Assembly: GCA_964035545.1 (NCBI GenBank)
Contig: OZ037765.1
Coordinates: 34,806,080 to 34,870,079 of the forward strand
Length of the DNA stretch: 64,000 nucleotides
Direction of reading: 5' to 3'
DNA from: Bugula neritina
Taxonomy: Eukaryota; Animalia; Bryozoa
Part shown: one piece after another, positions 25,807-58,800 of the stretch
Layout: each line of letters opens with the position of its first letter
Position numbering within the stretch: the stretch's first letter is position 1
Made by a program: the position numbers and the translations under genes
The notes under the pieces: generated by a model
The model's database searches: none
Seen by the model: only the letters and a program-made list of their open reading frames with translations
Told to the model about the DNA's origin: nothing

Positions 25807-28800
25807 GTTAGTAAATCAATAACTTATACACAGTGTGTCAAATTAATTCTGTAAGAAGTTAGTAAATACTGAATGAGTTTCAGTGATAAGGAAAGTTTCA
25901 CTGGTTGTATTCCATTTAGGAGCAGTAGTGGAGAAATTGAGATAGCCCAAGTTCTTTAAATTTCTTTATAGATTGTGGTTTGGGGCACGGGTTGAAATTA
26001 TTGCGAGAACATAACTTCTTTTGCTACATTTCTAATCTTTCTCAATTTCTCCATTACTGCACCTACCTCTTGTATTCAATGTAACTGGCCCCGTGTGATA
26101 TATTTATTGTGTACTTGCTGATAAACTTGCTGATAAAAACTAAATAAAATAAAACAAGAGTTATATAAATGATTGCATGCATAAATGGGGTTAAAAATAT
26201 CAAAGTAATGCTCACAAAAACTATGTACAAGAAAAGCCATAAAAGTATTTATTACAAAATAATAATTCAGATGATATAATAATATGGATAAAAGTAACCA
26301 ACCTCTTGGGTCTTTCATACACAGCACCAATATAATTATTATATTGAACAACCAGAATAAAATGATACAGTTTTGCTGCCAACTAATTCTAATAAGTTTA
26401 CCAAGAATTTATATACTATGGCTGCTGTTACTGTACCAGGCAAAAATATTGTCCCTAAAATACCACAATGATTGTGTCCCAAAACATAGTGAACATTCAC
26501 TGGGTAGCCTCAGGGTATCAACTTAGCTTAGTAGAGGTAGGACAAGAATGATAGACACCTCAACCACAACGCCTGACCACATATCTAATAGTCAGCACAA
26601 GGCAGATGAGTAATGCCTGCTGACGTATGTCACCTAAACATAAAGAAGAAGTTAATGGGGTGATGAGGTCAATAGTTATTTATAGTGGGTAATACACAAC
26701 CAGTTACATTCAGTAACCAAAGTTTCTGTCATGTCACAGCTACAGTACATCTTCTGTCTATAGATGTGGTGTGGTGTGAGTTTATGTTGTAAACAAAAGA
26801 AAACGATAAGTTAAAATACATGCACACGCGCACGCACGCACACGCACGCACACGCACACACACGCACACACACTTATATTCATATAAGCTAAAGTTAAGG
26901 TATTTCAACATGATTTACTGGCCAGTGGTATACTGTGTATAATCAGTTAGTCAAACTGATTATTATTATTTATAAAGTGGTGGATATTTTGTAGAGAAGT
27001 ACTGGGTGTGGTTCAACACATCCAGTATAGATGGAGCTGATGATGAGTGGATGGAGAATGATACTACACCCTACACTATAGAAGAGATCAAGAATAAAAG
27101 TAGACATCATACAGTGACTCATGTTATACTGAAGTATGGCATTCCTCCAAATATCAACACACTGTTTCCTCATCTCACACATCTGAGGGTATCTGGAATA
27201 TTCGCATGTCATAACTGGACCAGGTATTATATTGTGTCTAACACATGCATGCAGTATAAGAGAAGAAAATGAGAATTTCTTATCAGTGGTGACTATTCAT
27301 ACTGTTAGCTAGTATTTAGTGACTATTCATACTGTTAGCTAGTATTTAGTGACTATTCATACTGCTAGCTAGTATTTAGTGACTATTCATACTGCTAGCT
27401 AGTATTTAGTAACTATTCATACTGCTAGCTAGTATTTAGTGACTATTCATACTGCTAGCTAGTATTTAGTGACTATTCATACTGCTAGCTAGTATTTAGT
27501 GACTATTCATACTGCTAGCTAGTATTTAGTGACTATTCATACTGCTAGCTAGTATTTAGTGACTATTCATACTGTTAGCTAGTATTTAGTGACTATTCAT
27601 ACTGCTAGCTAGTATTTAGTGACTATTGATACTGTTAGCTAGTATTTAGTGACTATTCACACTGCTAGCTAGTATTTAGTGACTATTCATACTGCTAGCT
27701 AGTATTTAGTGACTATTCATACTGCTAGCTAGTATTTAGTGACTATTCATACTGCTAGCTAGTATTTAGTGTCTATTCATACTGCTAGCTAGTGTTTAGT
27801 GACTATTCATACTGCTAGCTAGTATTTAGTGACTATTCATACTGTTAGCTAGTATTTAGTGACTATTCATACTGCTAGCTAGTATTTAGTGACTATTCAT
27901 ACTGCTAGCTAGTATTTAGTAACTATTCATACTGCTAGCTAGTATTTAGTGACTATTCATACTGCTAGCTAGTATTTAGTAACTATTCATACTGCTAGCT
28001 AGTATTTAGTGACTATTCATACTACTAGCTAGTATTTAGTGACTATTCATACTGCTAGCTAGTATTTAGTGACTATTCATACTGCTAGCTAGTATTTAGT
28101 GACTATTCATACTGCTAGCTAGTATTTAGTGACTATTCATACTGCTAGCTAGTATTTAGTGACTATTCATACTGCTAGCTAGTATTTAGTGACTATTCAT
28201 ACTACTAGCTAGTATTTAGTGACTATTCATACTGCTAGCTAGTATTTAGTGACTATTCATACTGCTAGCTAGTATTTAGTGACTATTCATATACTGCCAG
28301 CTAGTATTTAGTGACTATACATACTGCTAGCTAGTATTTAGTGACTATACATACTGCTAGCTAATATTTAGTGAATATTCATACTGCTAGCTAGTATTTA
28401 GTGACTATTCATACTGCTAGCTAGTATTTAGTAACTATTCATACTGCTAGCTAGTATTTAGTGACTATTCATACTGTTAGCTAGTATTTAGTGACTATTC
28501 ATACTGCTAGCTAGTATTTAGTGACTATTCATACTGCTAGCTAGTATTTAGTAACTATTCATACTGCTAGCTAGTATTTAGTGACTATTCATACTGCTAG
28601 CTAGTATTTAGTAACTATTCATACTGCTAGCTAGTATTTAGTGACTATTCATACTACTAGCTAGTATTTAGTGACTATTCATACTGCTAGCTAGTATTTA
28701 GTGACTATTCATACTGCTAGCTAGTATTTAGTGACTATTCATACTGCTAGCTAGTATTTAGTGACTATTCATACTGCTAGCTAGTATTTAGTGACTATTC

Positions 28801-31800
28801 ATACTGCTAGCTAGTATTTAGTGACTATTCATACTACTAGCTAGTATTTAGTGACTATTCATACTGCTAGCTAGTATTTAGTGACTATTCATACTGCTAG
28901 CTAGTATTTAGTGACTATTCATACTGCTAGCTAGTATTTAGTGACTATTCATACTGCTAGCTAGTATTTAGTGACTATTCATACTGCTAGCTAGTATTCA
29001 GTGACTATTCATACTGCTAGCTTGTATTTAGTGTCTATTCATACTGCTAGCTAGTATTTAGTGACTATTCATACTGCTAGCTAGTATTTAGTAACTATTC
29101 ATACTGCTAGCTATAGTATTTAGTGACTATTCATACTGCTAGCTAGTATTTAGTGACTATTCATACTGCTAGCTAGTATTTAGTGACTATTCATACTGCT
29201 AGCTAGTATTTAGTGACTATTCATACTGCTAGCTAGTATTCAGTGACTATTCATACTGCTAGCTTGTATTTAGTGTCTATTCATACTGCTAGCTAGTATT
29301 TAGTGACTATTCATACTGCTAGCTAGTATTTAGTAACTATTCATACTGCTAGCTATAGTATTTAGTGACTATTCATACTGCTAGCTAGTATTTAGTGACT
29401 ATTCATACTGCTAGCTAGTATTTAGTGACTATTCATACTGCTAGCTAGTATTTAGTGACTATTCATACTGCTAGCTAGTATTTAGTGACTATTCATACTG
29501 CTAGCTAGTATTTAGTGACTATTCATACTGCTAGCTAGTATTTAGTGACTATTCATACTGCTAGCTAGTATTTAGTGACTATTCATACTGCTAGCTGTAT
29601 TTAGTGACTATTCATACTGCTAGCTAGTATTTAGTGACTATTCATACTGTTAGCTAGTATTTAGTGACTATTCATACTGTTAGCTAGTAGTTAGTGACTA
29701 TTCATACTGCTAGCTTGTATTTAGTGTCTATTCATACTGCTAGCTAGTATTTAGTGACTATTCATACTGCTAGTTAGTATTTAGTGACTATTCATACTGT
29801 TAGCTAGTATTTAGTGACTATTCATACTGTTAGCTAGTAGTTAGTGACTATTCATACTGCTAGCTTGTATTTAGTGTCTATTCATACTGCTAGCTAGTAT
29901 TTAGTGACTATTCATACTGCTAGCTTGTATTTAGTGTCTATTCATGCTACCAGCTAGTATTTAGTGACTATTCATACTGCTAGCTAGTATTTAGTATTAT
30001 AGTATATAGAATGATACTGTAATAAATATGATATCCTATCACCAAATCATCTATCTAGTTCTCAATCTATCATATATTAGTATTTAGGTTATCTTTAGAG
30101 TTATCTTTGTTTTCATATCTGTATGTTATGTTACAGCATATCTTCACTGGAGAATCTTGAGGTATTGAATATATCATTTAATAGCCTATCTGAAAGTCTA
30201 CCTGAAGGTCTACCTGACAATATATTCACATCCTTACTATCATTGAGAGAGTTGAACATGAGGCGCTGTGAACTGTCAACTCTACCAAACAGGTGTGTAT
30301 TATATTATAGTGTAGAATGATACTGTAATATATATAATATCTCATCAGTAACTCAGCAACTGTCTGTATACATAGCAAAGGTTTCTACAGTTACACTCAG
30401 GTTGAAGATATTCTGTTGAGACTTAAAGAATCCATGACACACTTTACTTATATAGCATGAAAATATTCATCTATACCTTAGCTATCATCTAATCATCCTT
30501 TTAAGGGTGGATGGCTAGACTACTTTGTTTTATAACAAGTTTAGTGCATGCATGTCCAAAAAACTTTCGGATTTCTGAGCTCTCAGTACACACGTATTAC
30601 GCCGCTTCCGGTCGGCTTCGAGTCCTAGTTACTATGTAACTAATAGTAATAATTGCATACTTTCCACAGCGTGTTATTTTTAGCCACTGCAACACATAGG
30701 TCAATCACTGAACTGGCATACAATTTAAAACATAGAGTACAACTATGCCCAATGAAAAAAACAAATGCTACCATTTTATCATTCATATTAAGAGCTAAAG
30801 TTACTTCCGTTAGAAATTTTAAGCATCGGAAAAATCAAATAGCCTCACCTCCACGATGTAATTAGAACGGGTGGTTAGGTACGGCGATAACACGATATTG
30901 TTAAAAGAAATTAGCTAAATCCAACGAGTGGTAAACTTTTCTATAAAACATTACAAATAATTATGTAACTTATTACACTGCCTTACAAATAGATTATCAT
31001 TACCGTAACCGGATATTACCAATATAACGCGTGCCTAGTAGTACTACTAGTAGTAGTCGCTCGCTATCTGTATAAATTCGATTTCATGTTGCCATTGGAC
31101 TCTAACGAACAAACTTATTACTTATATTACTAGTTACACTTACTGTGAACATGACTACACGAGTGGTTTCTAGCTCTAAAGGCAAATGCAAAAGAAGAAT
31201 GTGTGAAGCTGCAATGTGTTCGTACAAAGAAAAGCACCTGTTTAAATGGCCTGCTGATACTCATACTGTGTGTGGTGAAAAATGGACCAAGTTTGTCAAT
31301 GTGAAAAGAAAAGATTTTCTGCCTGATAACAACTCTCGTTTGTGTTTTCAGCATTTTAATGATGAACAATTTACAAACATGGGCATGTATAAAGCAAAGC
31401 TCATTAACATGTAAGTGAATAACTCCCTCAAACTCATATTGATACTCATACTGATATACTGATGCAGTGATTGTGACACTGACTGTGATAGAATTAGACG
31501 ATAATGATGGTTCTTTTGATGTTGATTTTCAACAACAAGTATAACTATAACTATTACGTATTACTAAAAGTTGGTATAAGTCAATAGGATCGTCATGACC
31601 GTGTTGATTCAATTTCATGTGATTATCACTTTGAAAAACTTGCAAGTACAAGTTTGCATTTATGATTTACACGATAACCATTATTGTAAGGGAATTCATA
31701 ATGGTGATAATATGAAAGACTTATAATTATCAGAATGTGTCATAGTCACTTGGATACATACCATTAATATTATTATATTAATATTATGATTCATACGCAC

Positions 31801-34800
31801 CGATACTCATGCTATGAGTATGATACTGGTTATTTGTGCCATCATCAATACCAGTAAATGGTAAATATTGTTCACTTAGCTTATTGAAAGAATGAACATT
31901 CATTGTTTTTTATTTACTCTTTAGATTGCATTTAGAGAAAACAGCAGTCCCAACTATTCATTTAGTGGAAACTGAGGGTGCAACTGGATGTACTCCATTA
32001 ACCCCTAGAAAACAAAGTCAGCAGGCGGCCACTATCACACCTAAAGAAGCTCGCTGGTTAAAAAGATCAGACCCCGATTTCCTGTAAGGATTACAATAAT
32101 TATTGAAAATGCATCTTGAGCAATAAAATTGAAATATGATGGAGACAATTGAGATTTTCTGCAGCTGTTTCAATAATATTTTTCCATTTACCTTCATATA
32201 TAATAATATTTTAGAGCTTTGCCAAGTCAAACTAAAAAACCAGCTCTCAGTCTTAAGCCAGAAAAAAGGGGCCTACAGCAAGGAAAAGGACACAATAAAT
32301 ATGTGCAAACACCTAGAAGAATGCAGAAAAATATTAGAAGCAAAGCTATTCAATGCTGGTATATAGAAATATGGCGAAATAGTATTGTTCACTTAGCTCC
32401 AAAACTGAATTCATAGCTTTTCTCCATATTTATTTTTATTTAAAATGCATGTTCTAATGCAACAAAAAAAACAAATATTTTTTTATTTTGATTAGTATAA
32501 AAAGTCAACTTCTGTGTAATGGAAATAATATTTTTAATTTTCCACCTCAAGGTGTGTCAAAAATGAATTTGGGCAATATATCCACTTGTAGCCTCAGTTT
32601 CCATTGAAGTGTAGATATCCGCTTTCACTGTAGAGCAGCTGTATGTTTGGTTTTATTGGTACTTTATTAGAGCCATAAATAGCAATGTGAAAACTATAAT
32701 AAATAAAACAATATATTGGTAAAAATATGTAAAAATTTATACTATGTCACAAAGTTTCATGAAAACAATAATATTGTTATATATTATATTACATTGCATT
32801 GCATAAGATATTCTAGTACTAGGAATATTGTAATACCTGTTTGCTCTACATAGCTTCTACAAAGTGACTACTAAGTCATGGCTCTAGCACCTGACCTACC
32901 ATGGCTAGGTCAGGTGCTAGAACAATCATGGTGTGCAGCTTCCAAGCATTGATACATAGCTAAATTAAATTGTTTGCAAGGTTTTTACTCACTAATACAC
33001 ATTCATAACATAACAGTAACTTTAACAAAAACAAATTTTATTGGCAATAAGGTTAAAAAGATATTTACTGGGCGTTAATTAAATACATTTCATTACTAAA
33101 TTACTGATTATGTGCACAAACAGGATGTATTACAAAAGGGACATTCTGGCTGTTACATGAATGAATATGAAATCTTGATAAGGTTTATAAAGTGCTACTA
33201 GTATGACTTAGTAAGGACTTTAAGAAGATATGTACTAGCAAATGTTCTGCTGCATGCATATATTTTATTAGTGTCCCAACTTTACAAGTGTGTCAGAGAT
33301 TCTGGAACATGAGTTATAATTTGATTTAAATCTTCATTGTACACGAATTTGCTGAACATCCATTCAGCAAATTCTTCCTCATCTTCAGTTGGGGGAATGT
33401 AGCTTGCACCCAATCATATAAGCAAGCTGGTAAAGGGCGTCTCTCACCTTTTTTAATATCTGGAAACAGCCAGAACACCAAAAACCGGTAGCTGCAGAAT
33501 CTTTTTTTAGTGTTGAGAGAATGGGCCTTCTCATCAAACAAATCATCTACCAAAATAAATGATTGGCTAAATAATCAAGTAAGACTATCTAGAAAAACTA
33601 ACAATAACAGTTACTAATATACAGTAGCAATTGACTAACCATGATATCTTAGGTAGCTGCTGTATGCAACTTCTAATACAGCTGGTTGCGTCAATTGCTG
33701 TACTCCCGGGTGCTGTGTTATACATTCTATGCCGTCATCTAATCGAAGGTTTGCAGCATGATCACGACAACAAACAGACTGTTCTACTGTAGGCTGATTT
33801 TGACAGCGGTGGCAAGTGCACCACTCCTTGGCTGGCCTTATATTTTTCTACAAAACAAGCTTTTTTAAAAAAAACATTGTTACCAGTATCATCCACATTA
33901 AGTCCATTAATTACTGTGTCTAAATTTGTTTCCTGTATTTTTCTTTGTATTAAAAATTGAGTCCAATGAGGCTGAAGTTTGAAAATACTTTAAAATCATG
34001 GGTTTCCAAATATTCCAAGTTTGCATTACTATTCAAACTATGTTTATATTTATAGTTAATAATTAATTAGATTTTTTATATTAAAACAAACTCATAATTT
34101 CTGCTATGAAATAAACCAAATTTTCAAGAATTTTAAAACATTTTATTGTTGTTAGTACTATATGTTATACTATAAAAGCAGAAATTCAGAGAAATGGGGG
34201 GGGGGCTTACAAATAGAATACTAAATGCTATCATCGTGAATACAAGTTTGACATGATTATGTAAGTGATTAACTTATTTTGTTAAAGATCGGTATAGCCA
34301 CAATTACAATAAAAATGAATAATAATTATTATTATGCATTTATAAAAATACAATCCTTCCCTTGACCTAAAATATCAGGTAAATCCAACTACAAATAATT
34401 AATACTAATGGTGTGGTGGTTCGTGGAACTACCAGCAGCACAACATGTAGGGTCGCGCAATTGACCCGGAACAATGGATAACCAATTAGCGTAGTTGATA
34501 GTTAGCAGCAATTGTAGTTTCCCGCTGCTAACTCAGTCGAAGCTAGAGTGTGAAATAGATTAGATGTGTAACTTGTTTGGAAATAATGTATCGTTTTTAT
34601 AATGTATAATTGTGTGTAAAATATACTCGTTCACTCGACTTATCCTGGTGCAGTTCTATAGTAAATAAATAGACTCTCTGGATAGCACATCAACCCTAAA
34701 TCTGAAAATTATAACAGTGGTGGCAGCAGTGGGATAGTGCATCCAAGATGGAGACTGAAAATGCTGGAACTCAACCACCGGCAATCGAAGGTGAGCGTAG

Positions 34801-37800
34801 AGACAATGCTGTAGAGACAATGCCTGTTAACCATGTAGTAGAAGAGCGAAGGGTTCCGCGAGAACTAGCTGAGGACCGCTACAGGTTAAAGGCGCCCACC
34901 TTCACGGGTGAAGAGGAGGTGGAACAATTTATCCAAGAGTTTAGCGACGTAATGGACGTCGCTCAGTGGCCCCCTAGGGTGGCCTTGCTGAAGCTTAGAA
35001 TGGCATTAATGGACAAAGCCAAGCCCTATGGGCTGGGCGTAGACATTGATAATATCTTTGCTTCTCTGCGGGCCCGCTTTGGCCTCTCTGCTACAGATGC
35101 CAGGGCCCGATTGCAGAGGTTGCGGCGTGATCCCTGCACCCCGCTGCGGGAGCATGCCGCCGCGGTCATGAAGCTGGCACAGATCGCGTACAGCGACTTG
35201 CCCCCAGTCAACCGCGAGAGGTACACCCTCGACGCTTTCATAGCATCTGTCGACGATCTGGGTCTCCACCACCAGTTTCTAGCTAGGGGAGTCACCACCG
35301 TTGAAGATGCTCTGACTGAGGGGGAAGCTTACCTCCTAGCTAATCAAATGCATAAAAGTCGCGGAAGCTCCCGCCAAGTGGAGATAGACCGCGCAGACAC
35401 GGCCGCGGGACAAGGGGAGGAAACCTCCGCCGCGGCTGCCGTGTCCCAGTTGGCGACGGCATCGAAAGTCACTCAACTGACGGACATGCTAGCCAAGCTG
35501 ATAGCAAAACTGACACCACAAAACCCAGTGAGTACCGCCCCTGAGCCCATGCGGCCATCGGCGCCGCCACAGGGAGAAACAGTCAGTTTTTGCTGGGAGT
35601 GCGGAAATCAAGGACATTTCCGCCGATATTGTCCCTTCCTAAATCAGGGGTTAAACTACCGCGGCCCGCAGATGTTCCCACCTTCCGCGGGCCGACGATG
35701 AAACCTCCAGGGAAGAAGAAACGCAGGTCACCCAGACGGGTACCGCGTACTGGCAACCAACAGTGGCAACAGCCACGACGGACCAGCAAGGGGCTTCGCC
35801 CCGCAGCTGCCTTTTCTATGCCCCTTCACAACAGATTCACAGGGCTACAAGTCCAAGAATCTGGATGGGAGCCCACAAAGGTAGCTGAGAATCTAGCCTC
35901 GGCACCCCCGAGGCCTACCTACCACCGCCCTAAGAGACCTCCTTCGCGACCCAAAGCGAGGGAGGTACTCCCTGCGAGAGTAAGGCCTGAAGGGAGAGTT
36001 CAGGTGCAGCCCCATGGGAACAGCTATTTCTTGCCCGGTAAACTGGAAGGCAAAGCTGTTACTTTCCTCATTGATTCGGGCTGTACCACAAACCTCTTAA
36101 GCCGCCAACTCTTCGACACCCTCAGTACTAGGGTCAGGGGCGAGATGGAAGCATACGAAGGGGAATACGGCACCCTCGCTGACGGGTCGTGCCTTCCCTT
36201 CTATGGTATAATTGAGCTGACGGGACGAGTCCGCGATCAAACGATCCAAGAGACGTTCATCGTCAGTCAGCTCAAGGAGGATGCTATCCTCGGGATGCCG
36301 TTCCTTAAACGGCACGGATGTCACATAGATTTTAGCAGATCTGCAATGATGATGTCCGGGCGGGAACTCGCCTGCGTCGACAAGTTCGGCCGCCCTTTAG
36401 TGGGAGGTGTGCAAGTGGTACGCAACCGTATCATACCAGGCCGCTCCCGGGCTACCATTCACTGCAGGGTGAATAGTAGCCGGATCTCTGGACTCGGGGT
36501 GGTTGAAGGCGCGCACGAAAAGATCCAACTTGCCAGCAGTCTGAATCACCTGACTGAGCAAGGGGAGATCTTAGTGCAGTGTGTCAACCCCTTTACCGAG
36601 CCTATCAAGCTCCCGGCTGGGTCGATGCTGGGCCGTTTTCACTCTGTTCAGGAGGGAGACGTAGGCCCGTCGCTGGGTGATGCGACGGAGGCACCCCCTC
36701 AGTGCCCTATTCAGGGACGGGGGGCAGTCCCAACACATCTCCGGGAGTTATACGAAACAGCCAGTGGCGGCTGCGCGAGTAACAGAGAACGCCAAGCTAT
36801 GGCTAAGTTAGTACGCGACTACGGTGATGTGTTCAGCAGCGGAGAGCATGACGTGGGACTGACTGGAATTGTCAGACACGAAATACCGCTGACTGCAGGG
36901 ACAGTCCCTGTCCGGCAGCCCACACGCAGGCTGGGGCCGGAGAAAGAGAAGGAGGTTAGCCGACAAGTACGGGATCTTCTGGACCGGGGACTGATAGAGC
37001 CCGCCCATAGTGCGTGGAGCTCGCCAGTCGTACTGGTCCGGAAGAAAGACGGCAGTTGGCGGTTCTGTGTGGACTACCGCAAACTCAATAGCGTAACCAT
37101 ACAGGACGCCTACCCTCTACCTCGTATTGACGAGTCATTGGACGCCCTAGCCGGCAGCAAGTACTTCAGTACGTTAGACTTGCTAAGCGGCTATTGGCAG
37201 GTTCCTCTGAGTCCCGACGCCCAAGAGAAAGCGGCGTTTATCACACGGGACGGTTTGTGGAAGTGGAAGGTGCTGCCCTTCGGGTTAACCTCCGCCCCAG
37301 CCACCTTCCAGAGGCTGATGGAACAAGTCCTTAGCGGACTCCATTGGAAGACACTGCTGGTCTACCTCGATGATGTCATCGTAATCTCTCCAGACTTCGA
37401 GACACATGTCAGTCGTCTGCAGGAGGTTTTCGAGAGACTCCGAGGTGCCGGTCTTAAGCTCAAACCTTCCAAGTGCGCTCTATTGCAGCCGGAGGTCAAG
37501 TATCTGGGGCACGTTGTCGGTCGAAACGGCGTGGCAACGGATCCCGAAAAGGTACGGGCAGTAGAAGACTGGGTCACCCCCCAAGACTTGACCGGACTCC
37601 GGGCTTTCTTGGGGCTGGTAGGGTATTACAGGCAATACATACCAGACTTTGCGGGCATAGCCCAGCCGTTAAACCGGCTCACCGCAAAGGGAGTGACGTG
37701 GCAGTGGACTCCAGTCGAGCAAGAAGCGTTCGACCGCCTCAAGGGCTGCCTACTAACGGCGCCCATCTTGGCCTACCCAGACCCCACTCTGGAGTACATC

Positions 37801-40800
37801 CTAGACACGGACGCCAGTGACCAAAATGTTGGCGCTGTGCTGTCACAAGTGCAGGAAGGCCGAGAGGTAGTAGTAGCCTACTACAGCAAGTCTCTCTCAC
37901 CCGCTGAACGAAATTACTGCACTACCCGCAAGGAGCTGCTGGCAGTAATCAAGTCAGTGAAGCACTTCAGACCATATCTATATGGCAGGAAGTTCCGGCT
38001 GCGTACGGATCATGCCTCGCTGATCTGGTTGTGCAGGAGAGCAGAGCCCTCTAGTCAGGTCGCCCGGTGGCTCGAAATCCTAGCTGAATTCTCATACCGG
38101 ATCGAACATCGACCGGGCAAGAGACACAGCAATGCGGATGGGTTGAGTCGCCGACCTGACGGAGGTTGCAAACAGTGTCTCAACATCGAGAGGAGGGATG
38201 GAGGTCCCCCGCGATGCGAGTTGGAGACGCTGGCTCATCACGGAGCACCGTTTGACTGGGATCAAGGTCAACTCAGGCAAAGAGTTGATGAGTCCCCGGA
38301 GGATGTACAAAACCTCCGCGCCAACCCTGTACTGGCCGGTAATGTTCGAGAGCTGAAGAAGCTCCAAGAAGAGCTGCCTGGAGTCGTGGCAGACATATAC
38401 CGGGCCAAAAGGGAAGGGCGACGACCCAGCGAGGAACGCATACGACAGGGATGCGCCGAGTTCCGGCTATACTGTCAGCGTTGGGACTCGCTGCGGATCG
38501 GGCAGGATGGGTTACTAACCATCTCTCTAGCTGCCAGCGGCAGACACCCGGAGAGGAAGAGGGTAGTCTGCCCCCCAGCCATCCGCCGTGAGTTGATTTG
38601 GGATACTCACAAGCAGGCCCACGCAGGGGTCAAGCGAGTGATGTCCAAATTACGACTTCGGTGGTATTGGCCACAAATGGAGCGTGATGTCCGGCTCAGA
38701 GTCAAACAGTGTGAGATCTGCCAGGCCAGTAAGCATAGCCGCCCCCTGGTGAAGCAGGACGGCGGAGGCTATACGCTGGTAGGCCCTGGCAAGTAGTCGC
38801 TGTAGACCTGGTCGGACCCATGCCCCTGACCCCCAGAGGCAATAATTGGATCCTAGTACTAACCGACCACTTTACTAGGTGGGCGGATGCTCTGGCTATC
38901 CCAGATGCATCAGCCCCAACAGTGGCCAGGGCACTAGACCAACATGTATTCTGTTATTTTGGGCTCCCCGAACAGATACACTCTGATCAAGGCGCTCAAT
39001 TCCAGTCTCAACTGATGAGCGACCTTTGCCGCCTCTGGGGAGTAAATCAGAGCAGGACCACCCCCTACCACCCTCAAGGTAACGGGGTGGTGGAGCGCAA
39101 CAACCGGATGCTAGGTGATGCACTCCGGAGTCTCCTCCTTGGACGAGGTCAAGAGGAATGGGATACGGTGTTGCCACAAGTCATGCGTGCATACCGTAGC
39201 ACCCCACACACCAGTACTGGTGAGACCCCAAACCTCTTGATGCTCGGGAGAGAGACTCGTGTCCCTGACCATCTCACTTATCACGTTCCAGAGCAAGATA
39301 AATCAGTCCACGAGTATGCCAGTGAACTAGTGGAACGGATGAAGGCCGCACACGATATACTGCGCCAACAGCAGTGGAAGGTGCGGCACGAAGATTCCGA
39401 TGAACCACCTCTCTATCAAAGGGGAGATAAGGTGTGGATGGTCAATTACCGTAGGCGCCGCGGACAGGCTGATAAGCTGAAGCCTAAGTTCGTAGGCCCC
39501 TACGTGGTCGTCGAGGCTATGCCCAATCATACGTACAAGATTGAGCGCTCAGGACAGGTGTCTATCCAGAATGAGTCTCGCTTGAAACCGTATTGGGCTA
39601 GCCCCGGCGGAGTGGGAGAAGCCCCCCCGTTGTTAGAGCCCAGGAGGCAAACAACAACGCGCGGGCGACGGCGGCATGGACCTGAATACGAAGTGGTCAT
39701 ACCGCGGGAAGAAAACTTGGTGAGAGAGGAGCGGCAGCTTTTGTCAACAGAAGCGTGTCCGCCACCGCCAAGTCTAATTCCATCACTTCCAGAAACCGAG
39801 CCGGTTCCGGAAGTGCAAACCCCCATGGAGGGAGGGGCTCCATCCGGAGAACAAGAAGAGGTGACCGCTAACGGTGAAGTAGAGACGCCATTAGAGGCCC
39901 CTACTAACGAACCGGCAAGCGTGTCACCCCCCCCTAGAAAGGGGACAGCGTACGAGGCAACCCCCCGCATACTTGAAGGACTTCGTATGTGACTGCGTTA
40001 AAAGCGGCACACATGAAAGTCTAGGGGAAAACCGTACGAGAAAAAAATCGAGCAAATGTGGGAGTTGTCAACACCACGGAAATATCAACTTTTGTATCGG
40101 CGGAAATAGAAACAAAATTCATCCGCCGGGTGCACAAAGTCTTAATCACGCACCCCAACCACGTTGCTCGATCTTTTCATACGCTGATGCAGTCAGGAGT
40201 AGACGTGTTTCTAAGCAGTAGTTCAAACCATTTCACACACTCAGTATGTCTTACGACAACAGATCGTGGGGTGAGTTAACTATATCTTAATACGAAACTA
40301 GATTGCATCGCTCAGCGCTGACTCACTGAGTCAACCGAGCTGGAGATAGGTTAGTGAAATACCGTAGTAAGAACTCAGTTTGACTTAGAGATTTTTATAA
40401 TCTCATTGCAATACGTGTTCTATCTGACTATTCACTACCATTAATCTCTACGAGGTAACTGAATTAGGAGTTGCCAAGCTGTTCAAGCTGACAACACAGC
40501 AGTGTACTGTATTAACACTGTTGAAACTTTTTCAGATTACACTCGACCCGCTGCAACCAGGGTACGGGATAGAACACTTCCCGCTCCGTATCCGGAGGAG
40601 TATGCTAGTGGTGACCGGCCTGAGCCACTACGCCGCCGTTGGCGGTGGGTGTCTCCACAAACAGAGGAAGAAATAGAAACGGCCTGGGGGTCCAGAGGAC
40701 GGACGAGATGCCAGATCTGTGGTGAAGATTGCGCCTCTCACCGCTCCCTTAAACTACACGTCAATGCTCATCTCCTACTAACATTCTGCCCCTGCGGGTA

Positions 40801-49800: not shown

Positions 49801-52800
49801 TCCAATCCTGTGGTACCTCTTCGTTTCTCCATGACTCTGTGATGAGTTCAGTAAGCCTCAGTATAAGCTCCGCACCACCTTTCTTCAACAGCTCAGGATG
49901 AATACCATCAACTCCTGGTGACTTCCTATCAGAGAGCGCATTTACAGCTCTCATAACCTCTGTGACATCGGGACATTCATTCATCCATTCTTGGGTTGCC
50001 TGTTGGTGTATGTGACTGGTGATGTTAGGGTCCACATTTCCTGTTTCATTTAAGAGTGTTCGGAAGTGCTCTGTCCATCTCTGCATCAAATCATCTGTCT
50101 GGGTGAGGAGGGTGTGGTTGTCCTTGTCATACAGTTGGTCTGGGTGGTTTACACGTGGACCCCAGACTGCTCGCAGGTTTTCGTAGAAGCCTCTCGTGTC
50201 ATTTCGGTTAGCCAGTTCCTGCAGTTCAGCTGCCTTGTCTTGCCACCATTTGTTCTTTAGTTCACGGCATTTCTTTTGAAGTGCTCTGTTACATTCCTTG
50301 TACCTTCCTTTGGTTTTCCTGGTCAATCGGTTCATGACAGCAGAACGTGCTAGGTTCCTCTCACTTATTAGGTCTTGTAGTTCTATGGAGTGTTCATCAA
50401 ACCAGTCCCCGTGTTTTCTGCCAACAGTGCCTAGCTTCTCCTTCGATGTTTCATAAACTGTGTTCTTGAAGCTTTTCCATGCGTCGTCAAGTGTTCCAGG
50501 TGTTCTCAAGCTCAGTTTCTCACTTAGGGCTGTTTTCAAGTCATCAAGTATTTCCTTATCTTTCAGTTTGTTGACGTTGAGCTTTTTACTTGGTTGTTTA
50601 GACTTCTTCATTTTCCTTTTGATGATGAGGCTAGTGCGTGATTTTATCATGATATGGTCTGTGTTGCAGTCTGCCCCACGCATTGCTCTGGTGTCATGTA
50701 TGTCCTTCAGATCACGTTGACGGGTGATGACATAGTCAATCAGGTGCCAATGCTTGGATCGGGGGTGCATCCATGAGTTCTTGTGGGCTGGCTTATGTTT
50801 GAAAAAAGTGTTGGTGATTGCAAGTTGAAATTGGTTGCAAAGGTTCAGAAGACGCTCACCATTAGCGTTGATTTTCCCAGAGCCGTGCATTCCTATGACA
50901 TTTTTCCAGGTAGAAAAGTCGTCACGTACCCGAGCATTAAAATCACCCATAAGGATGATTTTGTCAGAGATATGGATATCTCTCAGCGTCTGGTTGAGCT
51001 GGTCATAAAAGCCATCAATACTTCCAGGAGCATTGGTCATTGTTGGGGCATAGATTGTTATGATGGTACAGTAACGGTCATGTTTCAGTGGTAGTCTCAA
51101 TGTCATAATTCTGTCATTCACAGGTTTAGGATCCTCGCAAAGTTTTAATGTGATGTTGTTGCTGATGGCTAGTCCTACGCCTGATTCGCTCTTCTCTGAT
51201 GATGGTTTCCCACTCCAGTAGATAGTATTTCCACTCTCCTCACGTATACAGCCGCTCTCAGCAAATCGCACTTCACTCAGTGCAGCAATGTCTATTTGGT
51301 AGTTTGACAGCACCTTCGATATAATGGCGCTTCTTCTTTCTGGTCGTTCAGCGTGTGAACGGTCTAGCATCGTTCTGATGTTCCATGATGCCAGGTTAAG
51401 TTTAATATGGGGTTGGACCTTTTTATCCTAGGCGACGTCCGGCCAGTATGAGTATTCTTTCTTTTGTGACTTCATGATACAACATGTGCTGGCAAGAATT
51501 TGTGAGGCTACTGTGTGGTTTGCCAGTTGGCACAGCAGCCCTCTCCACTATGCAGTGTCAATTGAGCTGGCAAGGATTATCCAAGACGAGCTCAGACTCT
51601 GAGTAGTCGCAGTGACCGGCCGGATATAATTCATCAAGTGAAGAATAACCGCCCTTGCAGGATGTCACAAGCCTGTCTTTTCTGTCTGGGTGTAGCTCCC
51701 ATAGATCCCTGAGCCGTTAGCCTGGTAGAACCAGTTACCAGTGGTGACCACGAGGAGGTGCCTCAGAGTCTTGATGATTGGTGACTTCACCAGTTTTTAC
51801 TTCGTCGCCTCAGCATCCTTGGAGTGTCTTCCTTCACTTTAGTAAGTTTGGCAGACATCCACCACCATTATTATAAACTGGTAAATAATGTAGGACTGTA
51901 TAAAGCTGTGTTAGCCCACCTGTCAAACTGCTACCATTTTTTGGTCGTGCAAATTCTATTACTTTGATACTGATAGGGTCTGAGTTTGTAGCTTTTAGTC
52001 TCGTTTCTAATATTTATTATCATAGCACTCACTCTAGCACTCCATACCAACCATATGAAACTCAGGCAGATTAGAATGTTGCTGTCCTCACCATGTAACT
52101 GATATTTCATATACCTGTATGTTATGTTACAGCATGTCTTCACTGAGGAATCTTGAGGTATTCAATATATCAAGGAATAACCTATATGAAGGTCTACCTG
52201 ACAATATATTCACATCCTTACTATCATTGAGAGAGTTGAACATGGAGAACTGTGAACTGTCAACTCTACCAAACAGGTGTGTATTATATTATAGTGTAGA
52301 ATAATACTGTAATATATATATATAATATCTCATCAGTAACTCAGCAACTGTCTGCATACATAGCAAAGGTTTCTACAGTTAACACTCAAGTTGAGGATGT
52401 TCTGTCAACATTTAAAATTATTCAAAGTTATTCTATAAAACTCATTTGTTAACTGGCATTTTAACTTAACCAGTTCTAAGTCTATGATTTGTCTATACAA
52501 GAAACTGCTTTCTCTGTTTGTTAGAGTTATCTTCCCTCTAATATAACCAACTGTCACTCACACTTCTGTTATGTCATATTGGACCTCTGCAGTTCAAACC
52601 AAGCTGTCACACAACTTATTTAAATTCTCTCCAAATTCTCATTTACTACTTGACTACTAACTGACTTCGTTAATTCTCAGTCTATGATTTACCAAATCCT
52701 AGACTACAGAATGAGTTCATACCTGTATGTTGTTTTACAGCATATTTTCACTGAAGAATATTGAGGTATTGAATATATCAGATAATAACCTATCTGAAGG

Positions 52801-55800
52801 TCTACCTGACAATATATTCACATCCTTACCATCATTGAGAAAGTTGTACATGAATTACTGTGAACTGTCAACTCTACCGAACAGGTGTGTATTATATTAT
52901 AGTGTAGAATGATACTGTAATAAATATATATATTGTTCTTGCAAATTATATTACTTTGATACTGGAAAGGTCTGAGTTTGTAGTTTTTAATCTCGTTTCT
53001 AATATATATTATCATATCACTCACTCTAGCACTCCATACCAACCATATGAAACTCAGGCAGATTAGAATGTTGCTGTCCTCACCATGTAACTGATATTTC
53101 ATATACCTGTATGTTATGTTACAGCATGTCTTCACTGAGGAATCTTGAGGTATTCAATATATCAAGGAATAACCTATCTGAAGGTCTACCTGACAATATA
53201 TTCACATCCTTACTATCATTGAGAGAGTTGAACATGTTGCGCTGTAAGCTGTCAACTCTACCAAACAGGTGTGTATTATATTATAGTGTAGAATGATACT
53301 GTAATATATATAATATCTCATCAGTAACTCAGCAACTGTCTGTATACATAGCAAAGGTTTCTACAGTTACACTCAAGTTGAGGATAGTCTGTTGAGACTA
53401 GAGCTAAGCTGTCAGCGTGTCAGCATTTTCCATGATATTTTCTTAATTCTGTGTATTTCCTGCCTGTTTTAGCTGTGAGTCATTTAGGAAGGCGAATTGC
53501 ATTTTTGTTGGTTAGAAGGGATAGGATTTCTACTTGATAGCTTACCATGTGTACAGTACTAATTCCTGTGTACTCTGAAGCTAGGATATTTCTGATCAGC
53601 TATCAGATTTACAAATTGTTAGATGCTACAGAATTTGGGGTTTAGAGTTCAGACAATAGTTTGTATACAAACACTGCACCCTACGACCCCAAGCTTTGTG
53701 CTGCATTCATCAATTCCCATCAGATTTTATCCCATGCAGTTGTTGGTTGTTGAGTGCTGATTGGCTGAGTTGTTCCGCTTGTATCACGTGCTGCAAGCCT
53801 GAATGTTTTCTCTTTTACTGGAAGTTCATTTATTCAGTTTAAAAAACCACAATCATAAACATGAAGGGTGGTTTGCCTTCTTCCATCTATAAGTAGAACA
53901 TATAATTGGTTGTTGAATGCAAACAAGTCTGACCCTCCTACCTGTCAGGGACTTGAAGTGAATATCTTTCAACCATTGGTTGGTGAGTAATATCTCTGTG
54001 CATAACACAGATGTTACAGGATTTAATTCACTTAGCCATATCTCTACACAGAGCTGGCCACCAGAAGTGGTGCTGAGTCCTCACTCTACACTCATGTACC
54101 CCCTGATGGCCCTTGTGACACATTTCTAAATATCCTGACTGTAGAAAGACTAGGGAATGTACACCCTGGACTTGTACATTAGCATGTTATTATAAGCTTG
54201 TAAATAATGTAGGACTGTATAAAGCTGTGTTAGCCCACCTGTCAAACCGCTACCATTTTTTGGTCGTGCAAATTCTATTACTATTATACTGATATGGTCT
54301 GAGTTTGTAGTTTGTAGTGTCGTTTCTAATATTTATTATCATATCACTCACTCTAGTACTCAATACCAACCATATGGATCTCAGACAGATTAGAATGTTG
54401 CTAACCTCACCATGTAACAGATCTTTCATACCTGTATGTTATGTTACAGCATGTCTTCACTGAAGAATCTTGAGGTATTGAATATATCATGGAATAAGCT
54501 ATCTGAAGATCTACTTGACAATATATTCACATCCTTACTATCATTGAGAAAGTTGAACATGAGTTACTGTGAACTGCCAACTCTACCAAACAGGTGTGTA
54601 ATATATTATAGTGTAGAATGATACTGTAATATATATATAATATCTCATCAGTAACTCAGCAACTGTCTGCATACATAGCAAAGGTTTCTACAGTTAACAC
54701 TGAGGTTGAGGATACTCTGTTAGGACTTAAGCTAAGCTGTCAGCATTTAAGCATTTTCCATGATAATTTTTTATTTCTGTGTATTTTCCACCTGCTTTTA
54801 GCTGTGAGTCATTCAGGGAGGTGAATTGCATTTTTGTTGGTTAGAAGGGATAGGATTTCTACTTGATAGCTTACCATGTGTACAGTACTAATTCCTGTGT
54901 ACTCTGAAGCTAGGATATTTCAGATCAGCTATCAGATTTACAAATTGTTAGTTGCTACAGAATTTGGGGTTTAGAGTTCAGACAATAGTTAGTATACAAA
55001 CACTGCACCCCACGACCCCAAGTTTTGTGCTGCACTCATCAATTCCCATCAGATTTTATCCCATGCAGTTGTTGGTTGTTGAATGCTGATTGGCTGATTT
55101 GTTCTGCTTGTATCACGTGCTGCAAGCCGGAATGTTTTCTCTTTTGCTGGAAGTTCATCTATTCAGTTTAAAAAACTACAATTATAAACATGAAGGGTGG
55201 TTTGCCTTCTTCCATCTATAAGTACAACATATAATTGGTTGTTGAATGCAAACAAGTCTGACCCTCCTACCTGTCAGGGACTTGAAGTGAATATCTGTCA
55301 ACCATTGGTTGGTGAGTAATATCTCTGTGCATAACACAGATGTTGCAGGATTTAATTCACTTAGCCATATCTCTACACAGAGCTGGCCACCAGAAGTGGT
55401 GCTGAGTCCTCACTCTACACTCATGTACCCCCTGATAGCCCTTGTGACACATTTCTAAATATCCTGACCGTATAAAGGCTAGGGAATATAAAGGTCTGAG
55501 TTTGTAGCTTTTAGTCTCGTTTCTAATATGTATTATCATAGCACTCACTCTAGTACTCAATACCAACCATATGGATCTCAGACAGATTAGAATGTTGCTA
55601 ACCTCACCATGTAACAGATATTTCATATCTGTATGTTGTGTTACAGCATATCTTCACTGAGGAATCTTGAGGTATTGAATATATCAGATAATAACCTATA
55701 TGAAGGTCTACCTGACAATATATTCACATCCTTACTATCATTGAGAGAGTTGAACATGGAGAACTGTGAACTGTCAACTCTACCAAACAGGTGTGTATTA

Positions 55801-58800
55801 TATTATAGTGTAGAATGATACTGTAATATATATATAATATCTCATCAGTAACTCAGCAACTGTCTGCATACAAAGCAAAGGTTTCTACAGTTACACTCAA
55901 GTTGAGGATATTCTGTCAACATTTAAAATTATTCAAAGTTATTCTATAAAACTCATTTGTTAACTGGCATTTTAACTTAACCAGTTCTCAGTCTATGATT
56001 TGTCTATACAAGAAACTGCTTTCTCTGTTTATTAGAGTTATCTTCCCTCTAATATAACCAACTCTGTCACTCACACTTCTGTTATGTCATATTGGACCTC
56101 TGTAGCTCAAACTAAACTGTCACACAACTTATTTAAAGTTTCTCCAAATTCTCATTTACTACTTGACTAATAACTGACTCCGTTAACTCTCAGTCTATGA
56201 TTTGCCAGATCCTAGGCTATAGAATGAGTTCATACCTGTATGTTATGTTACAGCATGTCTTCACTGAGGAATCTTGAGGTATTGGATATATCAAGGAATA
56301 ACCTATCTGAAGGTCTACCTGACAATATATTCACATCCTTACTATCATTGAGAGAGTTGGACATGGGGTACTGTAAACTGTCAACTCTACCAAACAGGTG
56401 TGTATTATATTATAGTGTAGAATAATACTGTAATATATATAATATCTCATCAGTAACTCAGCAACTGTCTGCATACATAGCAAAGGTTTCTACAGTTACA
56501 CTCAGGTTGAGGATATTCTGTTGAGACTAGAGCTAAGCTGTCAGCATTTAAGCATTTTCCATGATAATCTTTTATTTCTGTATCATGTGCTGCAAGCCGG
56601 AATGTTTTCTCTTTTACTGGAAGTTCACCTATTCAGTTTAAAAAAGTGCAATTATAAACATGAAGGGTGGTTTGCCTTCTTCCATCTATAAGTACAACAT
56701 ATAATTGGTTGTTGAATGCAAACAAGTCTGACCCTCCTACCTGTCAGGGGCTTGAAGTGAATCTTTCAACCATTGGTTGGTGAGTAATATCTCTGTGCAT
56801 AACACAGATGTTGCAGGATTTAATTCACTTAGCCATATCTCTACACAGAGCTGGTCACCAGAAGTGGTGCTGTGCCCTATCTCTACATTCATTTACCCCC
56901 TGATGGCCTTGTGGCACATTTCTAAATATCCTGACTGTAAAGACTAGGGAATATACACTCTGGACTTGTACATTAGCATATTATTATAAGCTGGTAAATA
57001 ATGTAGGACTGTATAAAGCTGTGTTAGCCCACCTGTCAAACTGCTACCATTTTTTGGTCGTGCAAATTCTAATACTTTTATACTGATAGGGTCTGAGTTT
57101 ATAGTTTGTAGTGTCGTTTCTAATATTTATTATCATATCACTCACTCTAGTACTCAATACCAACCATATGGATCTCAGACAGATTAGAATGTTGCTAACC
57201 TCACCATGTAACAGATATTTCATATATGTATGTTGTGTTACAGCATGTCTTCACTGAAGAATCTTGAGGTATTGAGGATATCATGGAATAACCTATCTGA
57301 AGGTCTACCTGACAATATATTCACATCCTTACTATCATTGAGAGGGTTGAGCATGCAGAGCTCTGAACTGCCAACTCTACCAAACAGGTGTGTATTATAT
57401 TATAGTGTAGAATGATACTGTAATAAATATAATATCTCATCAGTAACTCAGCAACTGTCTGCATACATAGCAAAGGTTTCTACAGTTACACTCAGGTTGA
57501 GGATATTCTGTTGAGACTAGAGCTAAGCTGTCAACGTGTCACATTTAAGCCATTTTCCATGATAATTTTTTAATTTTATGTATTTCCCCGAATTGCATTT
57601 TTGTTGGTTAGAAGGGATAGGATTTCTACTTGATAGCTTACCATGTGTACAGTACTAATTCCTGTGTACTCTGAAGCTAGGATATTTCAGCTCAGCTATC
57701 AGATTTGTGACACATATCTAAATATCCTGACTGTAGAAAGACTAGGGAATGTACACCCTGGACTTGTACATTAGCATATTATTATAAGCTGGTAAATAAT
57801 GTGGGACTGTATAAAGTTGTGTTAGCCCACTTGTCAAACTGCTACCATTTTTTGGTCGTGCAAATTCTATTACTTTGATACTGATAGGGTCTGAGTTTGT
57901 AGCTTTTAGTCTCGTTTCTAATATTTATTATCATAGCACTCACTCTAGTACTCAATACCAACCATATGAAACTCAGGCAGATTAGAATGTTGCTAACCTC
58001 ACCATGTAACAGATATTTCATATCTGTATGTTGTGTTACAGCATGTCTTCACTGAAGAATCTTGAGGTATTGAATATATCAGGGAATAACCTATCTAAAG
58101 GACTACCTGACAATATATTCACATCCTTACTATCATTGAGAGAGTTGACCATGAGGAACTGTAAACTGCCAACTCTACCAAACAGGTGTGTATTATATTA
58201 TAGTGTAGAATGATACTGTAATAAATATATCATCAGTAACTCAGCAACTGTCTGCATACATAGCAAAGGTTTCTACAGTTACACTCTGGTTGAGGATATT
58301 CTGTTGAGACTTAAGCTAAGCTGTTAGTAATTTCTATGACATCACAGCTGCCATAAGGCTTTGGTTTACTGGTCATAAAATAATTTAAGCTTTCATTAGT
58401 TTATGTATTTGAATTTTTAATAATTTGGCTCAAAGTTTGGGTATCTAATAAATTTTATCTAGCAAAAATAGAAGCAGAATAAGTGGTAGTAAAATTATCA
58501 TTGAACGTCAACACTGACTCAACCATGTTTTTTTACACTTTCATGCAGCTGGTAGAATTGAAAACACAATTGTTTTCTTTTTTGTTCAATGCAAGACAAC
58601 TTTGTACGGGTTGCATAGGAAGGAGTAGTTTTTTATTCAATTCCATGGAAGAGTAGCACATTGGATAAAGTTATGTTAGCAGATTTAACTAAATACTTTT
58701 ATTCATTTTCACCCTTACTATTGTAAGTTATGTAGATAATACCAAATCTAATTTTAATTAGTGGAGTATTAGATATACTACCCAGCTGCAGGCTAGGATA

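Follow-up and report, generated by a model that had tools for sequence, protein, structure and literature searches.

A tandem array of two-LRR cassette exons in a predicted LRR-Roc-COR-caspase gene of the bryozoan Bugula neritina

Described LRR arrays and LRR-Roc-COR relatives

LRR-ROCO proteins of Ectocarpus and other brown algae have been proposed to act as immune receptors (Zambounis et al. 2012, PMC3341825; Teng et al. 2024, PMC11378527). Their genes share with the ten-exon array described here, which lies in a 64,000-nt stretch of Bugula neritina DNA (the window), a predicted LRR-Roc-COR core, phase-2 LRR exons of equal length and an organization in clustered multigene families. Recent paralogues differ in LRR exon number in both systems, and the concave face bears signs of diversifying selection. 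However, two LRRs are encoded per 144-nt exon in Bugula and one per 72-nt exon in Ectocarpus (PMC3341825), and the Bugula introns lie just after LP(N), whereas an Ectocarpus exon starts at GxxP (PMC3341825). As the intron position differs, the two arrays are probably independent in origin and appear convergent. Reverse-strand or inactivated intronic cassettes of the Ectocarpus type were not seen in eight Bugula loci, and splice variants are documented for Ectocarpus, whereas the Bugula array is known here from genome sequence alone. Unlike Ectocarpus, the Bugula host is an animal and its gene has a caspase fused at the C-terminal end.

In lampreys and hagfish, the germline VLR gene is incomplete, and somatic assembly completes it with flanking cassettes that lack splice sites. 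LRR modules are the units of diversity there as in Bugula, but the Bugula gene is complete and its cassettes are ordinary exons, all on the coding strand. The Dscam1 clusters of arthropods are, like the Bugula array, tandem arrays formed by exon duplication. In Dscam, a single structural slot is filled by one of several mutually exclusive exons under the control of competing RNA pairings, whereas the Bugula cassettes are additive solenoid repeats for which no docking or selector pairings were detected at word size 7.

An LRR sensor or scaffold coupled to an NTPase switch is common to the Bugula gene, MFHAS1 (MASL1), LRRK1/2 and NLRs. Vertebrate MFHAS1 is single-copy and has no caspase, and NLRs carry a NACHT ATPase and signal to caspases via adaptors; in contrast to this adaptor-based recruitment, the Bugula caspase is predicted to reside within the same polypeptide. 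For the LRRs-caspase hybrids of amphioxus, a direct link between recognition and apoptosis has been proposed (Zhang et al. 2008, PMC2575513). The Branchiostoma floridae protein C3XQ16 (1609 aa) combines LRR, Roc, COR-A, COR-B and Peptidase_C14 according to Pfam, and its similarity to the Bugula gene is distant (31% identity). Amphioxus genes have the active site QACxG (PMC2575513), whereas the Bugula pentapeptide is HACSG, with the canonical Q changed to H. The amphioxus genes come without a described cassette-exon array or diversifying selection, their exon structure being outside this comparison.

Among named homologues, the nearest are proteins of the bryozoan Watersipora subatra (XP_067947674.1 and XP_067948342.1; MFHAS1 homolog/uncharacterized), in keeping with an earlier assignment of the window to an animal. 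Both proteins, like C3XQ16, unite LRR, Roc, COR and Peptidase_C14 (Pfam), and they belong to the same family as the Bugula gene, the Roc-COR exon being 32-35% identical. The Watersipora gene likewise has phase 2-2 two-LRR exons, an AG/C junction codon, a 2055-nt Roc-COR exon and a split caspase. Whereas its cassettes are old and mutually different, those in the window are 88-98% identical, which points to a recent local expansion. We found no description of this family in bryozoans in the literature searched.

Anatomy of the array and of the whole gene

A first-pass annotation of the window had described ten LRR cassette exons at 30137-58185 on the + strand, nine of them 144 nt and the other 156 nt long, each of phase 2-2, encoding two LRRs and lying in near-identical splice contexts. 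All of this was recovered (10/10 without mismatches). In a pattern search of the window, the acceptor pattern TGTATGTTRTKTTACAGC matched ten times (0 mismatches; chance expectation 0.09), as did the donor pattern CCRAACAGGTGTGTA (0 mismatches; chance expectation 0.22), and the matches, all on the + strand, pair up to give ten exons. The features are, with their basis in brackets:

25561-25703, + strand: candidate first exon or promoter region, uncertain (conserved block upstream of five paralogues)
26995-27223, + strand: 5' coding exon before the LRR array (acceptor AG 26993-94, donor GT 27224-25, ends in phase 2)
27289-29995, no strand: 30-nt minisatellite, ∼90 copies (Tandem Repeats Finder, 96% matches)
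30137-30292, + strand: cassette 1, 156 nt, two LRRs, 12-nt internal duplication (acceptor/donor patterns, open frame)
30423-43019, no strand: nested transposable elements in intron 1 (genomic copies, LTR pair, Pfam)
44246-44389, + strand: cassette 2, 144 nt (acceptor/donor patterns, open frame)
45548-51370, − strand: transposable-element ORFs in intron 2 (Pfam)
52133-52276, + strand: cassette 3, 144 nt, mosaic (open frame, site comparison)
52741-52884, + strand: cassette 4, 144 nt, the most divergent copy (open frame, cassette comparison)
53125-53268, + strand: cassette 5, 144 nt (open frame)
54450-54593, + strand: cassette 6, 144 nt (open frame)
55647-55790, + strand: cassette 7, 144 nt (open frame)
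56254-56397, + strand: cassette 8, 144 nt (open frame)
57244-57387, + strand: cassette 9, 144 nt (open frame)
58042-58185, + strand: cassette 10, 144 nt (open frame)
59256-61258, + strand: large exon with the last LRRs, Roc GTPase and a COR-like region (Pfam, motifs, splice sites)
61388-61480, + strand: linker exon, phase 1 to 1 (AG/GT sites, frame continuity)
61749-61915, + strand: acidic linker exon, phase 1 to 0 (exon-chain reading)
62062-62262, + strand: caspase exon A, start of p20 (Pfam Peptidase_C14 profile positions 1-46)
62922-63144, + strand: caspase exon B, catalytic His (SHG) and Cys (HACSG) (Peptidase_C14 E=3.4e-10, profile positions 49-130)
63413-63613, + strand: caspase inter-subunit linker exon, Pro/Ser-rich, ending at the start of p10 (exon-chain reading)
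63778-63887, + strand: caspase exon D, p10, GTWFI (Peptidase_C14 profile positions 167-211)
63975-64000, + strand: start of the last caspase exon (stop codon ∼133 nt beyond the window end)

Every cassette is open solely in frame offset 1, which corresponds to phase 2 at either end, and the codon across cassette junctions is AG/C (Ser) in every case. Cassette 1 differs from the other nine by its internal 12-nt tandem duplication and groups with the cassettes that open the arrays of paralogues A and B. Phase 2 also occurs at the end of the upstream exon 26995-27223 and at the start of the Roc exon (59256), so any subset of cassettes stays in frame. The cassettes are thus interchangeable with respect to frame, as had been claimed; the accompanying figure of 2^10 in-frame subsets holds as an arithmetical possibility but does not describe observed isoforms.

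The exon order of the gene is a 5' exon, the ten cassettes, a 2-kb exon with LRRs, Roc and a COR-like region, a pair of linker exons and finally five caspase exons, and all junctions are GT-AG and phase-compatible. From 26995 to the caspase stop, every coding exon has an open frame and canonical splice sites. The 5' exon is kept at 89-93% identity just upstream of the cassettes in 7/7 fetched paralogues, and the block at 25561-25703 recurs, with 86-99% identity, at the equivalent place of paralogues B, C, E, F and G. In the large exon, which ends in phase 1 with the donor GTATGT from 61259, Roc (PF08477) scored 30.0 bits against a cutoff of 27 and is accompanied by the Roc motifs GNTMAGKT (P-loop) and DMGG. 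The same exon matched LRR_4 (32.8 bits) and LRR_8. The N-terminal LRR domain, a ROCO feature, is made up of the ten two-LRR cassettes and these matches. COR-A reached 14.8 bits, below its cutoff of 35.3; in homologues that align over the full length, both COR-A and COR-B were matched.

Profile matches to Peptidase_C14 are collinear across three exons (best E=3.4e-10), and both p20 and p10 are present with a predicted His-Cys dyad (SHG, HACSG); the linker exon at 63413-63613 had no Pfam match. In the downstream chain, the eight junctions are GT-AG and phase-consistent and the coding segments add up to a length divisible by three. Together with the Watersipora RefSeq models, which carry LRR, Roc, COR and caspase in one protein, this chain supports the earlier proposal that the gene is wired to a caspase, and with it a gene model in which the Roc-COR exon is joined to the caspase exons in one transcript. 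In this model, the most likely transcript would hold all ten cassettes, probably included constitutively, and would encode ∼1,590 aa if translation starts at ATG 27051.

Duplication, mosaicism and selection

Long self-alignments within the array reached 91-95% identity, among them those of 52933-54158 with 54260-55487 and of 51977-52933 with 55493-56445, and the duplicated unit is an exon plus its intron, ∼1.2 kb in length. The p-distance was 0.080 for exons, 0.054 for introns and 0.037 for the first 130 intron nt. The near-identical splice contexts are therefore explained by recent duplication of exon-plus-intron units and, as the introns are as alike as the exons or more so, splice-site identity is uninformative on regulated exon choice.

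Pairwise differences between cassettes of the array range from 1 to 20 nt. Cassette 3 has a mosaic structure: its 5' half resembles cassette 5 and its 3' half is identical to cassette 7. All four gametes were present in 22 of 55 site pairs. Cassette number varies as well: the seven neighbouring paralogues have 3, 7, 3, 5, 4, 2 and 4 cassettes. The splice sites of these cassettes are the same, and each is 129, 144, 147 or 156 nt long, every one of these lengths being divisible by three. Across eight genes that are 92-94% identical in the Roc-COR exon, cassette number thus ranges from 2 to 10. The idea of germline recombination that altered cassette number and content is supported by the range among paralogues, the mosaic copies and the pairs failing the four-gamete test. 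Genome-wide, a cassette core 24-mer had 145 matches, compared with 0 for the reversed control, and of 95 candidate paralogues of the Roc-COR exon at least 40 were scored, the closest ten all being open; the family is clustered on chromosome 1. The search for paralogues and orphan cassettes suggested earlier was fruitful in its first part, with 2 to 7 cassettes in each neighbouring paralogue, but no orphan, minus-strand or splice-site-less complete cassettes occurred in the eight loci examined, where one 29-nt cassette fragment and one cassette copy cut by an assembly gap were present.

Segregating sites in the array comprise 29 nonsynonymous and 3 synonymous changes (binomial p = 0.03), with pN/pS = 3.96 and pS = 0.026; the p value is modest, and the selection statistics come from 9 to 34 short, non-independent, recombining copies. 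A crude synonymous/nonsynonymous count across all 34 exons was not significant. The hypervariable codons 11, 14, 34, 36, 38, 39 and 41 correspond to the x positions of LxxLxLxxNxL, the LRR beta-strand motif. These comparisons support growth of the array by recent germline duplication under diversifying selection.

Germline diversification, splicing and transposons

Overall, this suggests a model, to which we assign a probability of roughly three in four, where the ten exons form the sensor arm, recently expanded, of a single intact LRR-Roc-COR-caspase gene from a large chromosome 1 family. Phase-2 introns flank each two-LRR cassette at the same point of the repeat and, because they share this position, germline unequal crossing-over and gene conversion can add, delete and blend cassettes with the frame kept. 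The array grew from ∼1.2-kb exon-plus-intron units, partly in two-unit blocks, before transposons inflated it to 28 kb, and selection diversified residues predicted on the concave LRR face. We infer that the product is a cytosolic one-piece sensor: upon binding of a ligand to the LRR arm, the Roc-COR GTPase switch would draw caspase domains together and so set off cell death in a manner resembling NLRs and inflammasomes, with a role in immunity or possibly in colony allorecognition.

Large intracellular sensor repertoires in animals are thought to be built mainly from NLRs. In a colonial lophotrochozoan, the Bugula gene suggests another solution, with dozens of predicted LRR-Roc-COR-caspase genes and a fast-evolving LRR arm that frame-neutral exons would allow germline recombination to lengthen, shorten and reshuffle. 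The family may therefore be a tractable case of how exon architecture promotes receptor diversification, and its one-piece design suggests that recognition may lead directly to cell death, a link open to biochemical tests.

In-frame interchangeability also bears on the main idea of the first-pass annotation, namely that different cells or zooids include different cassette subsets by regulated alternative splicing, which would generate a combinatorial repertoire from one gene. Every subset is in frame, the boundaries fall at one LRR point so that any subset would form a regular solenoid, and Ectocarpus LRR-ROCO genes with comparable symmetric LRR exons have up to nine annotated splice variants (PMC11378527). 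We nonetheless consider such regulation unlikely, as recent duplication explains the splice-site identity and the introns are equally similar. No docking- or selector-type complementary elements were found in the introns either: a full unit intron had no reverse-complement match in 25000-64000 at E<=0.1 and word size 7, a search that shorter pairings could escape. The examined Watersipora RefSeq homologues carry no isoform labels, and the two models of unequal length are paralogues (53% identity) and not isoforms. Moreover, much diversity is already encoded by dozens of paralogues, with 2 to 10 cassettes in the eight compared. Alternative splicing could coexist with germline diversification.

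Recombination or copying of cassettes in somatic cells, giving clonal diversity as for lamprey VLRs, is a hypothesis that Zambounis et al. proposed for Ectocarpus (PMC3341825). The Bugula array offers a general parallel in its near-identical tandem LRR cassettes with signs of gene conversion, but meiotic exchange explains the mosaicism equally well and the eight loci had neither splice-site-less nor reverse-orientation complete cassettes. Because the germline gene is complete, each cassette having splice sites and an open frame, somatic assembly is extremely unlikely. That the array is used combinatorially in a broader sense, with regulated skipping or within-colony recombination giving zooids or cell lineages different LRR arms, also seems rather improbable. 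If true, the intracellular repertoire of a colonial invertebrate, for immunity or allorecognition, would be individualised and would be based on ROCO proteins, not NLRs.

Germline diversification of an intact gene also has to be weighed against an array that is decaying or artefactual, either expanded in assembly or part of a functionless, transposon-inflated pseudogene. Young transposons account for ∼20 kb of introns 1 and 2. In intron 1, a ∼4 kb interspersed repeat (30423-34409; >40 genomic copies, 88-95% identity) adjoins an LTR retrotransposon (34410-41916) whose 307-bp LTRs are 100% identical by self-alignment and which matches protease, RT, RNase H and integrase in Pfam. Intron 2 carries ORFs for an integrase core with a PLA2-like domain (45548-46576) and for a 989-aa LINE endonuclease-RT (48401-51370; both Pfam). 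Tandem repeats also misassemble easily, and one paralogue cassette adjoins an assembly gap. However, the cassettes are not collapsed or duplicated reads, as their sequences and intron lengths differ; all coding exons are intact, and the combination of pN/pS >1 and conserved framework residues is a sign of selection and not of decay. We therefore regard decay or artefact as very improbable. The minisatellite at 27289-29995 takes up most of the intron that separates the 5' exon from cassette 1, and the two very large introns filled with transposable elements could impair splicing of cassettes 1 and 2.

Cassette exons within a predicted LRR-Roc-COR-caspase gene

With a probability of about three in four, we read this locus as an intact LRR-Roc-COR-caspase gene whose LRR arm expanded recently, was diversified in the germline and normally includes all cassettes. 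A pattern search of the window for the acceptor context of the cassette exons gave ten exact + strand matches and no mismatches (chance expectation 0.09), as did a search for the donor context (chance expectation 0.22), and the acceptor and donor matches pair up into ten exons.

Cassette exons
Cassette 1, 30137-30292, +, 156 nt
Cassette 2, 44246-44389, +, 144 nt
Cassette 3, 52133-52276, +, 144 nt
Cassette 4, 52741-52884, +, 144 nt
Cassette 5, 53125-53268, +, 144 nt
Cassette 6, 54450-54593, +, 144 nt
Cassette 7, 55647-55790, +, 144 nt
Cassette 8, 56254-56397, +, 144 nt
Cassette 9, 57244-57387, +, 144 nt
Cassette 10, 58042-58185, +, 144 nt

The single open frame of each cassette is that at offset 1, so that the 5' end supplies the last base of a codon and the 3' end the first two bases of another (phase 2-2), and two leucine-rich repeats (LRRs) are encoded in all ten, which bears out the first-pass annotation of symmetric two-LRR exons with matching splice contexts. 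The junction codon is AG|C (Ser) at every cassette boundary, and the 156-nt cassette 1 contains a 12-nt internal tandem duplication. As the neighbours of the array share this phase (phase 2 at the end of exon 26995-27223 and at the start of the exon from 59256), any subset of the ten cassettes would stay in frame, as had been correctly calculated before.

The exon at 59256-61258 encodes more LRRs, a Roc GTPase domain (Pfam Roc, 30 bits; P-loop GNTMAGKT; DMGG) and a long region that aligns full-length with proteins bearing COR-A and COR-B. It is followed by a chain of GT-AG, phase-matched exons.

Exons downstream of the Roc-COR exon
61388-61480
61749-61915
62062-62262
62922-63144
63413-63613
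63778-63887
63975 to ~64133 (past the window end)

Three of these match the caspase profile collinearly (profile positions 1-46, 49-130 and 167-211; best E=3.4e-10), and both catalytic residues are in place, His in SHG and Cys in HACSG. Exons were searched singly and joined only by summing lengths and phases; from the ATG at 27051, the summed length is 4779 nt, or 1593 codons, a multiple of three. LRR, Roc/COR and Peptidase_C14 occur together in single proteins of Watersipora subatra (RefSeq XP_067947674.1, 1419 aa, and XP_067948342.1, 1413 aa) and Branchiostoma floridae (C3XQ16, 1609 aa). The link to a caspase proposed earlier is thus supported, and the predicted one-protein LRR-Roc-COR-caspase architecture is independently backed by these models. 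The caspase active-site pentapeptide (window 63132-63149) reads HACSG where the canonical form is QACxG. A block at 25561-25703, ~1.3 kb ahead of the 5' exon, is 86-99% conserved among five paralogues and may be a first exon or promoter; a proline-rich low-complexity ORF comes after it.

The nearest named homologues are those of the bryozoan Watersipora. The homologous gene of Watersipora subatra (in OY755166.1, 63349071-63410713) spans ~57 kb, with very long introns between LRR exons of 141-153 nt, all phase 2-2 and joined by the AG|C codon, and then a 2055-nt Roc-COR exon; divergence among its cassettes is of long standing. With similar exon lengths and the same phases and junction codon in both, the phase 2-2 two-LRR cassette design is old.

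Duplicated exon-intron units and inserted transposons

Self-comparison of the window showed that introns were copied along with the exons. Segment 52933-54158 aligns with 54260-55487 over 1230 nt at 93.2% identity, a two-cassette block at 51977-52933 aligns with 55493-56445 over 959 nt at 93.6%, and many further self-alignments in the array lie at 91-95%. These alignments point to an ancestral duplicated unit of ~1.2 kb, with the shorter introns as its deletion variants. The splice contexts are alike because they were inherited through this recent duplication of exon plus intron, so that their near-identity is not itself evidence of a mechanism of cassette choice. Regulated combinatorial splicing has a parallel in the alternative splicing annotated for analogous brown-algal genes (PMC11378527), but it is an unlikely account of the Bugula array. 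A search of a full unit intron against 25000-64000 (E<=0.1, word size 7) for complementary elements that could give Dscam-like docking/selector pairing found none. Two Watersipora models of different length, considered as LRR-skipping isoforms because they differ by 141 aa, were rejected as such, being paralogues at 53% identity.

The preferred reading remains a recently expanded array whose cassettes are all normally included. Introns 1 and 2 contain transposons, and both giant introns were made by transposon insertion later than the duplication.

Transposons and repeats
Dispersed repeat of ~4 kb, 30423-34409, intron 1: >40 genomic copies (88-95% identity) spread over all nine chromosomes
LTR retrotransposon, 34410-41916, intron 1, adjoining the ~4-kb repeat: 307-bp LTRs, 100% identical
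Minisatellites, together ~13 kb of the 64 kb: 735-2064, 2988-5867, 5994-6460, 9623-14182, 14642-15410, 23805-24362, 27289-29995

An ORF scan found no ORF of ≥90 aa inside the ~4-kb repeat. As its LTRs are 100% identical, the retrotransposon inserted very recently; its protease-RT-RNase H and integrase ORFs lie in two different frames, and it has two further, unassigned ORFs (34748-35701 and 40502-41323). In intron 2 the insertions are an integrase-bearing element and a LINE. The 342-aa ORF at 45548-46576 (-) encodes a PLA2-like domain (PF08398) together with an integrase core and DUF5679, which is an unusual combination for a mobile element within an animal intron. The window is also unusually dense in long, very regular minisatellites (periods 22-63 nt, up to 152 copies, 93-98% matches), one of which fills the intron just 5' of cassette 1; some give spurious long ORFs, such as 9511-14085 (-). 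A second haplotype copy of the locus was sought in the assembly, where no allelic contig was found and intron 1 matched dispersed transposon copies only.

Paralogues, cassette turnover and variable codons

Of the paralogues and orphan cassettes for which the first-pass annotation had suggested a search, the former are abundant. A genome search with the Roc-COR exon gave 95 first-look candidates, of which at least 40 were scored as paralogues; the majority sit at 33.8-35.0 Mb of chromosome 1, in either orientation, and each of the ten closest is open. A 24-mer taken from the core of the cassette has 145 genomic matches, the reversed control 0. Seven neighbouring paralogues, whose upstream regions were fetched and compared with the window's gene, have 3, 7, 3, 5, 4, 2 and 4 cassettes in the interval from their conserved 5' exon to their Roc exon, with the same splice sites and lengths of 129, 144, 147 or 156 nt, each divisible by three; with ten cassettes, the window's gene is the richest of the eight. 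Three cassette-core matches at chromosome 1:33926367-33927963 (-) lie away from the Roc-COR exons of all 40 scored paralogues and could represent an unscored family member or an orphan cassette group. A metagenome contig with the closest public ORF (88% identity) was discarded as a source of cassette counts, as it starts 2.1 kb upstream of the Roc exon and shows one cassette.

In a tree of cassettes plus flanks, poorly resolved with 5 of 34 branches starred, cassettes did not cluster by gene, although for three of the genes the first cassettes did cluster by position. Cassette 3 is a mosaic, its two halves differing by 1 and 6 bases from cassette 5 and by 5 and 0 bases from cassette 7, and all four gametes are seen, within 144 nt, at 22 of 55 pairs of informative sites. 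The simplest explanation is that cassettes have exchanged sequence by unequal crossing-over and gene conversion. Recombination had been proposed earlier as germline or somatic; the varying cassette number, the mosaic cassette and the four-gamete result support the germline form. Somatic rearrangement of the VLR kind is very improbable because the gene is already complete in the germline, all its cassettes are ordinary coding-strand exons, and none without splice sites or in reverse orientation was found in the eight loci.

Unusually, the exons have diverged more than the introns. Across all aligned copy pairs, exon columns differ by 8.0% versus 5.4% for intron columns; the first 130 intron bases differ by 3.7%. 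Among cassettes 2-10, pN is 0.102 and pS 0.026 (ratio 3.96), and 29 of 32 segregating sites change an amino acid, against a neutral expectation of ~76% (binomial p = 0.03). In the 34 intact cassettes of the eight genes, codons 11, 14, 36, 38, 39 and 41 are the most variable, followed by 16 and 34, and framework residues are nearly invariant. Set against LxxLxLxxNxL, the variable codons fall on the x positions of its beta-strand segment, positions that in LRR proteins generally face the concave ligand-binding surface. Outside them, pN/pS is 0.57 across genes, and pooling all 34 cassettes in a crude synonymous/nonsynonymous count gives no significant result. The selection signal is site-specific and strongest in the window's own array. 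As the copies are short, non-independent and recombining, the pattern is only indicative of a recognition surface under diversifying selection.

Comparison with amphioxus and brown-algal genes

A literature search found no account of this gene family in bryozoans. A 2008 paper drew attention to 'LRRs-caspase' hybrids in amphioxus (PMC2575513); their domain chain matches the one predicted here, but they are not known to contain a cassette array. Among known systems, Ectocarpus and other brown algae offer the nearest precedent with their LRR-ROCO genes (PMC3341825, PMC11378527). In common are the LRR-Roc-COR core (the COR part being putative in the Bugula gene), symmetric phase-2 LRR exons, clustered paralogues differing in LRR number and positive selection on the concave face. 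In contrast to the algal genes, the Bugula gene has a predicted C-terminal caspase fusion and an animal host, and no reverse-strand intronic cassette copies were found in the eight loci. Whereas each 144-nt Bugula exon encodes two LRRs, the algal exons encode one per 72 nt. The intron also sits elsewhere within the repeat, and this difference in position argues for an independent origin of the two arrays.
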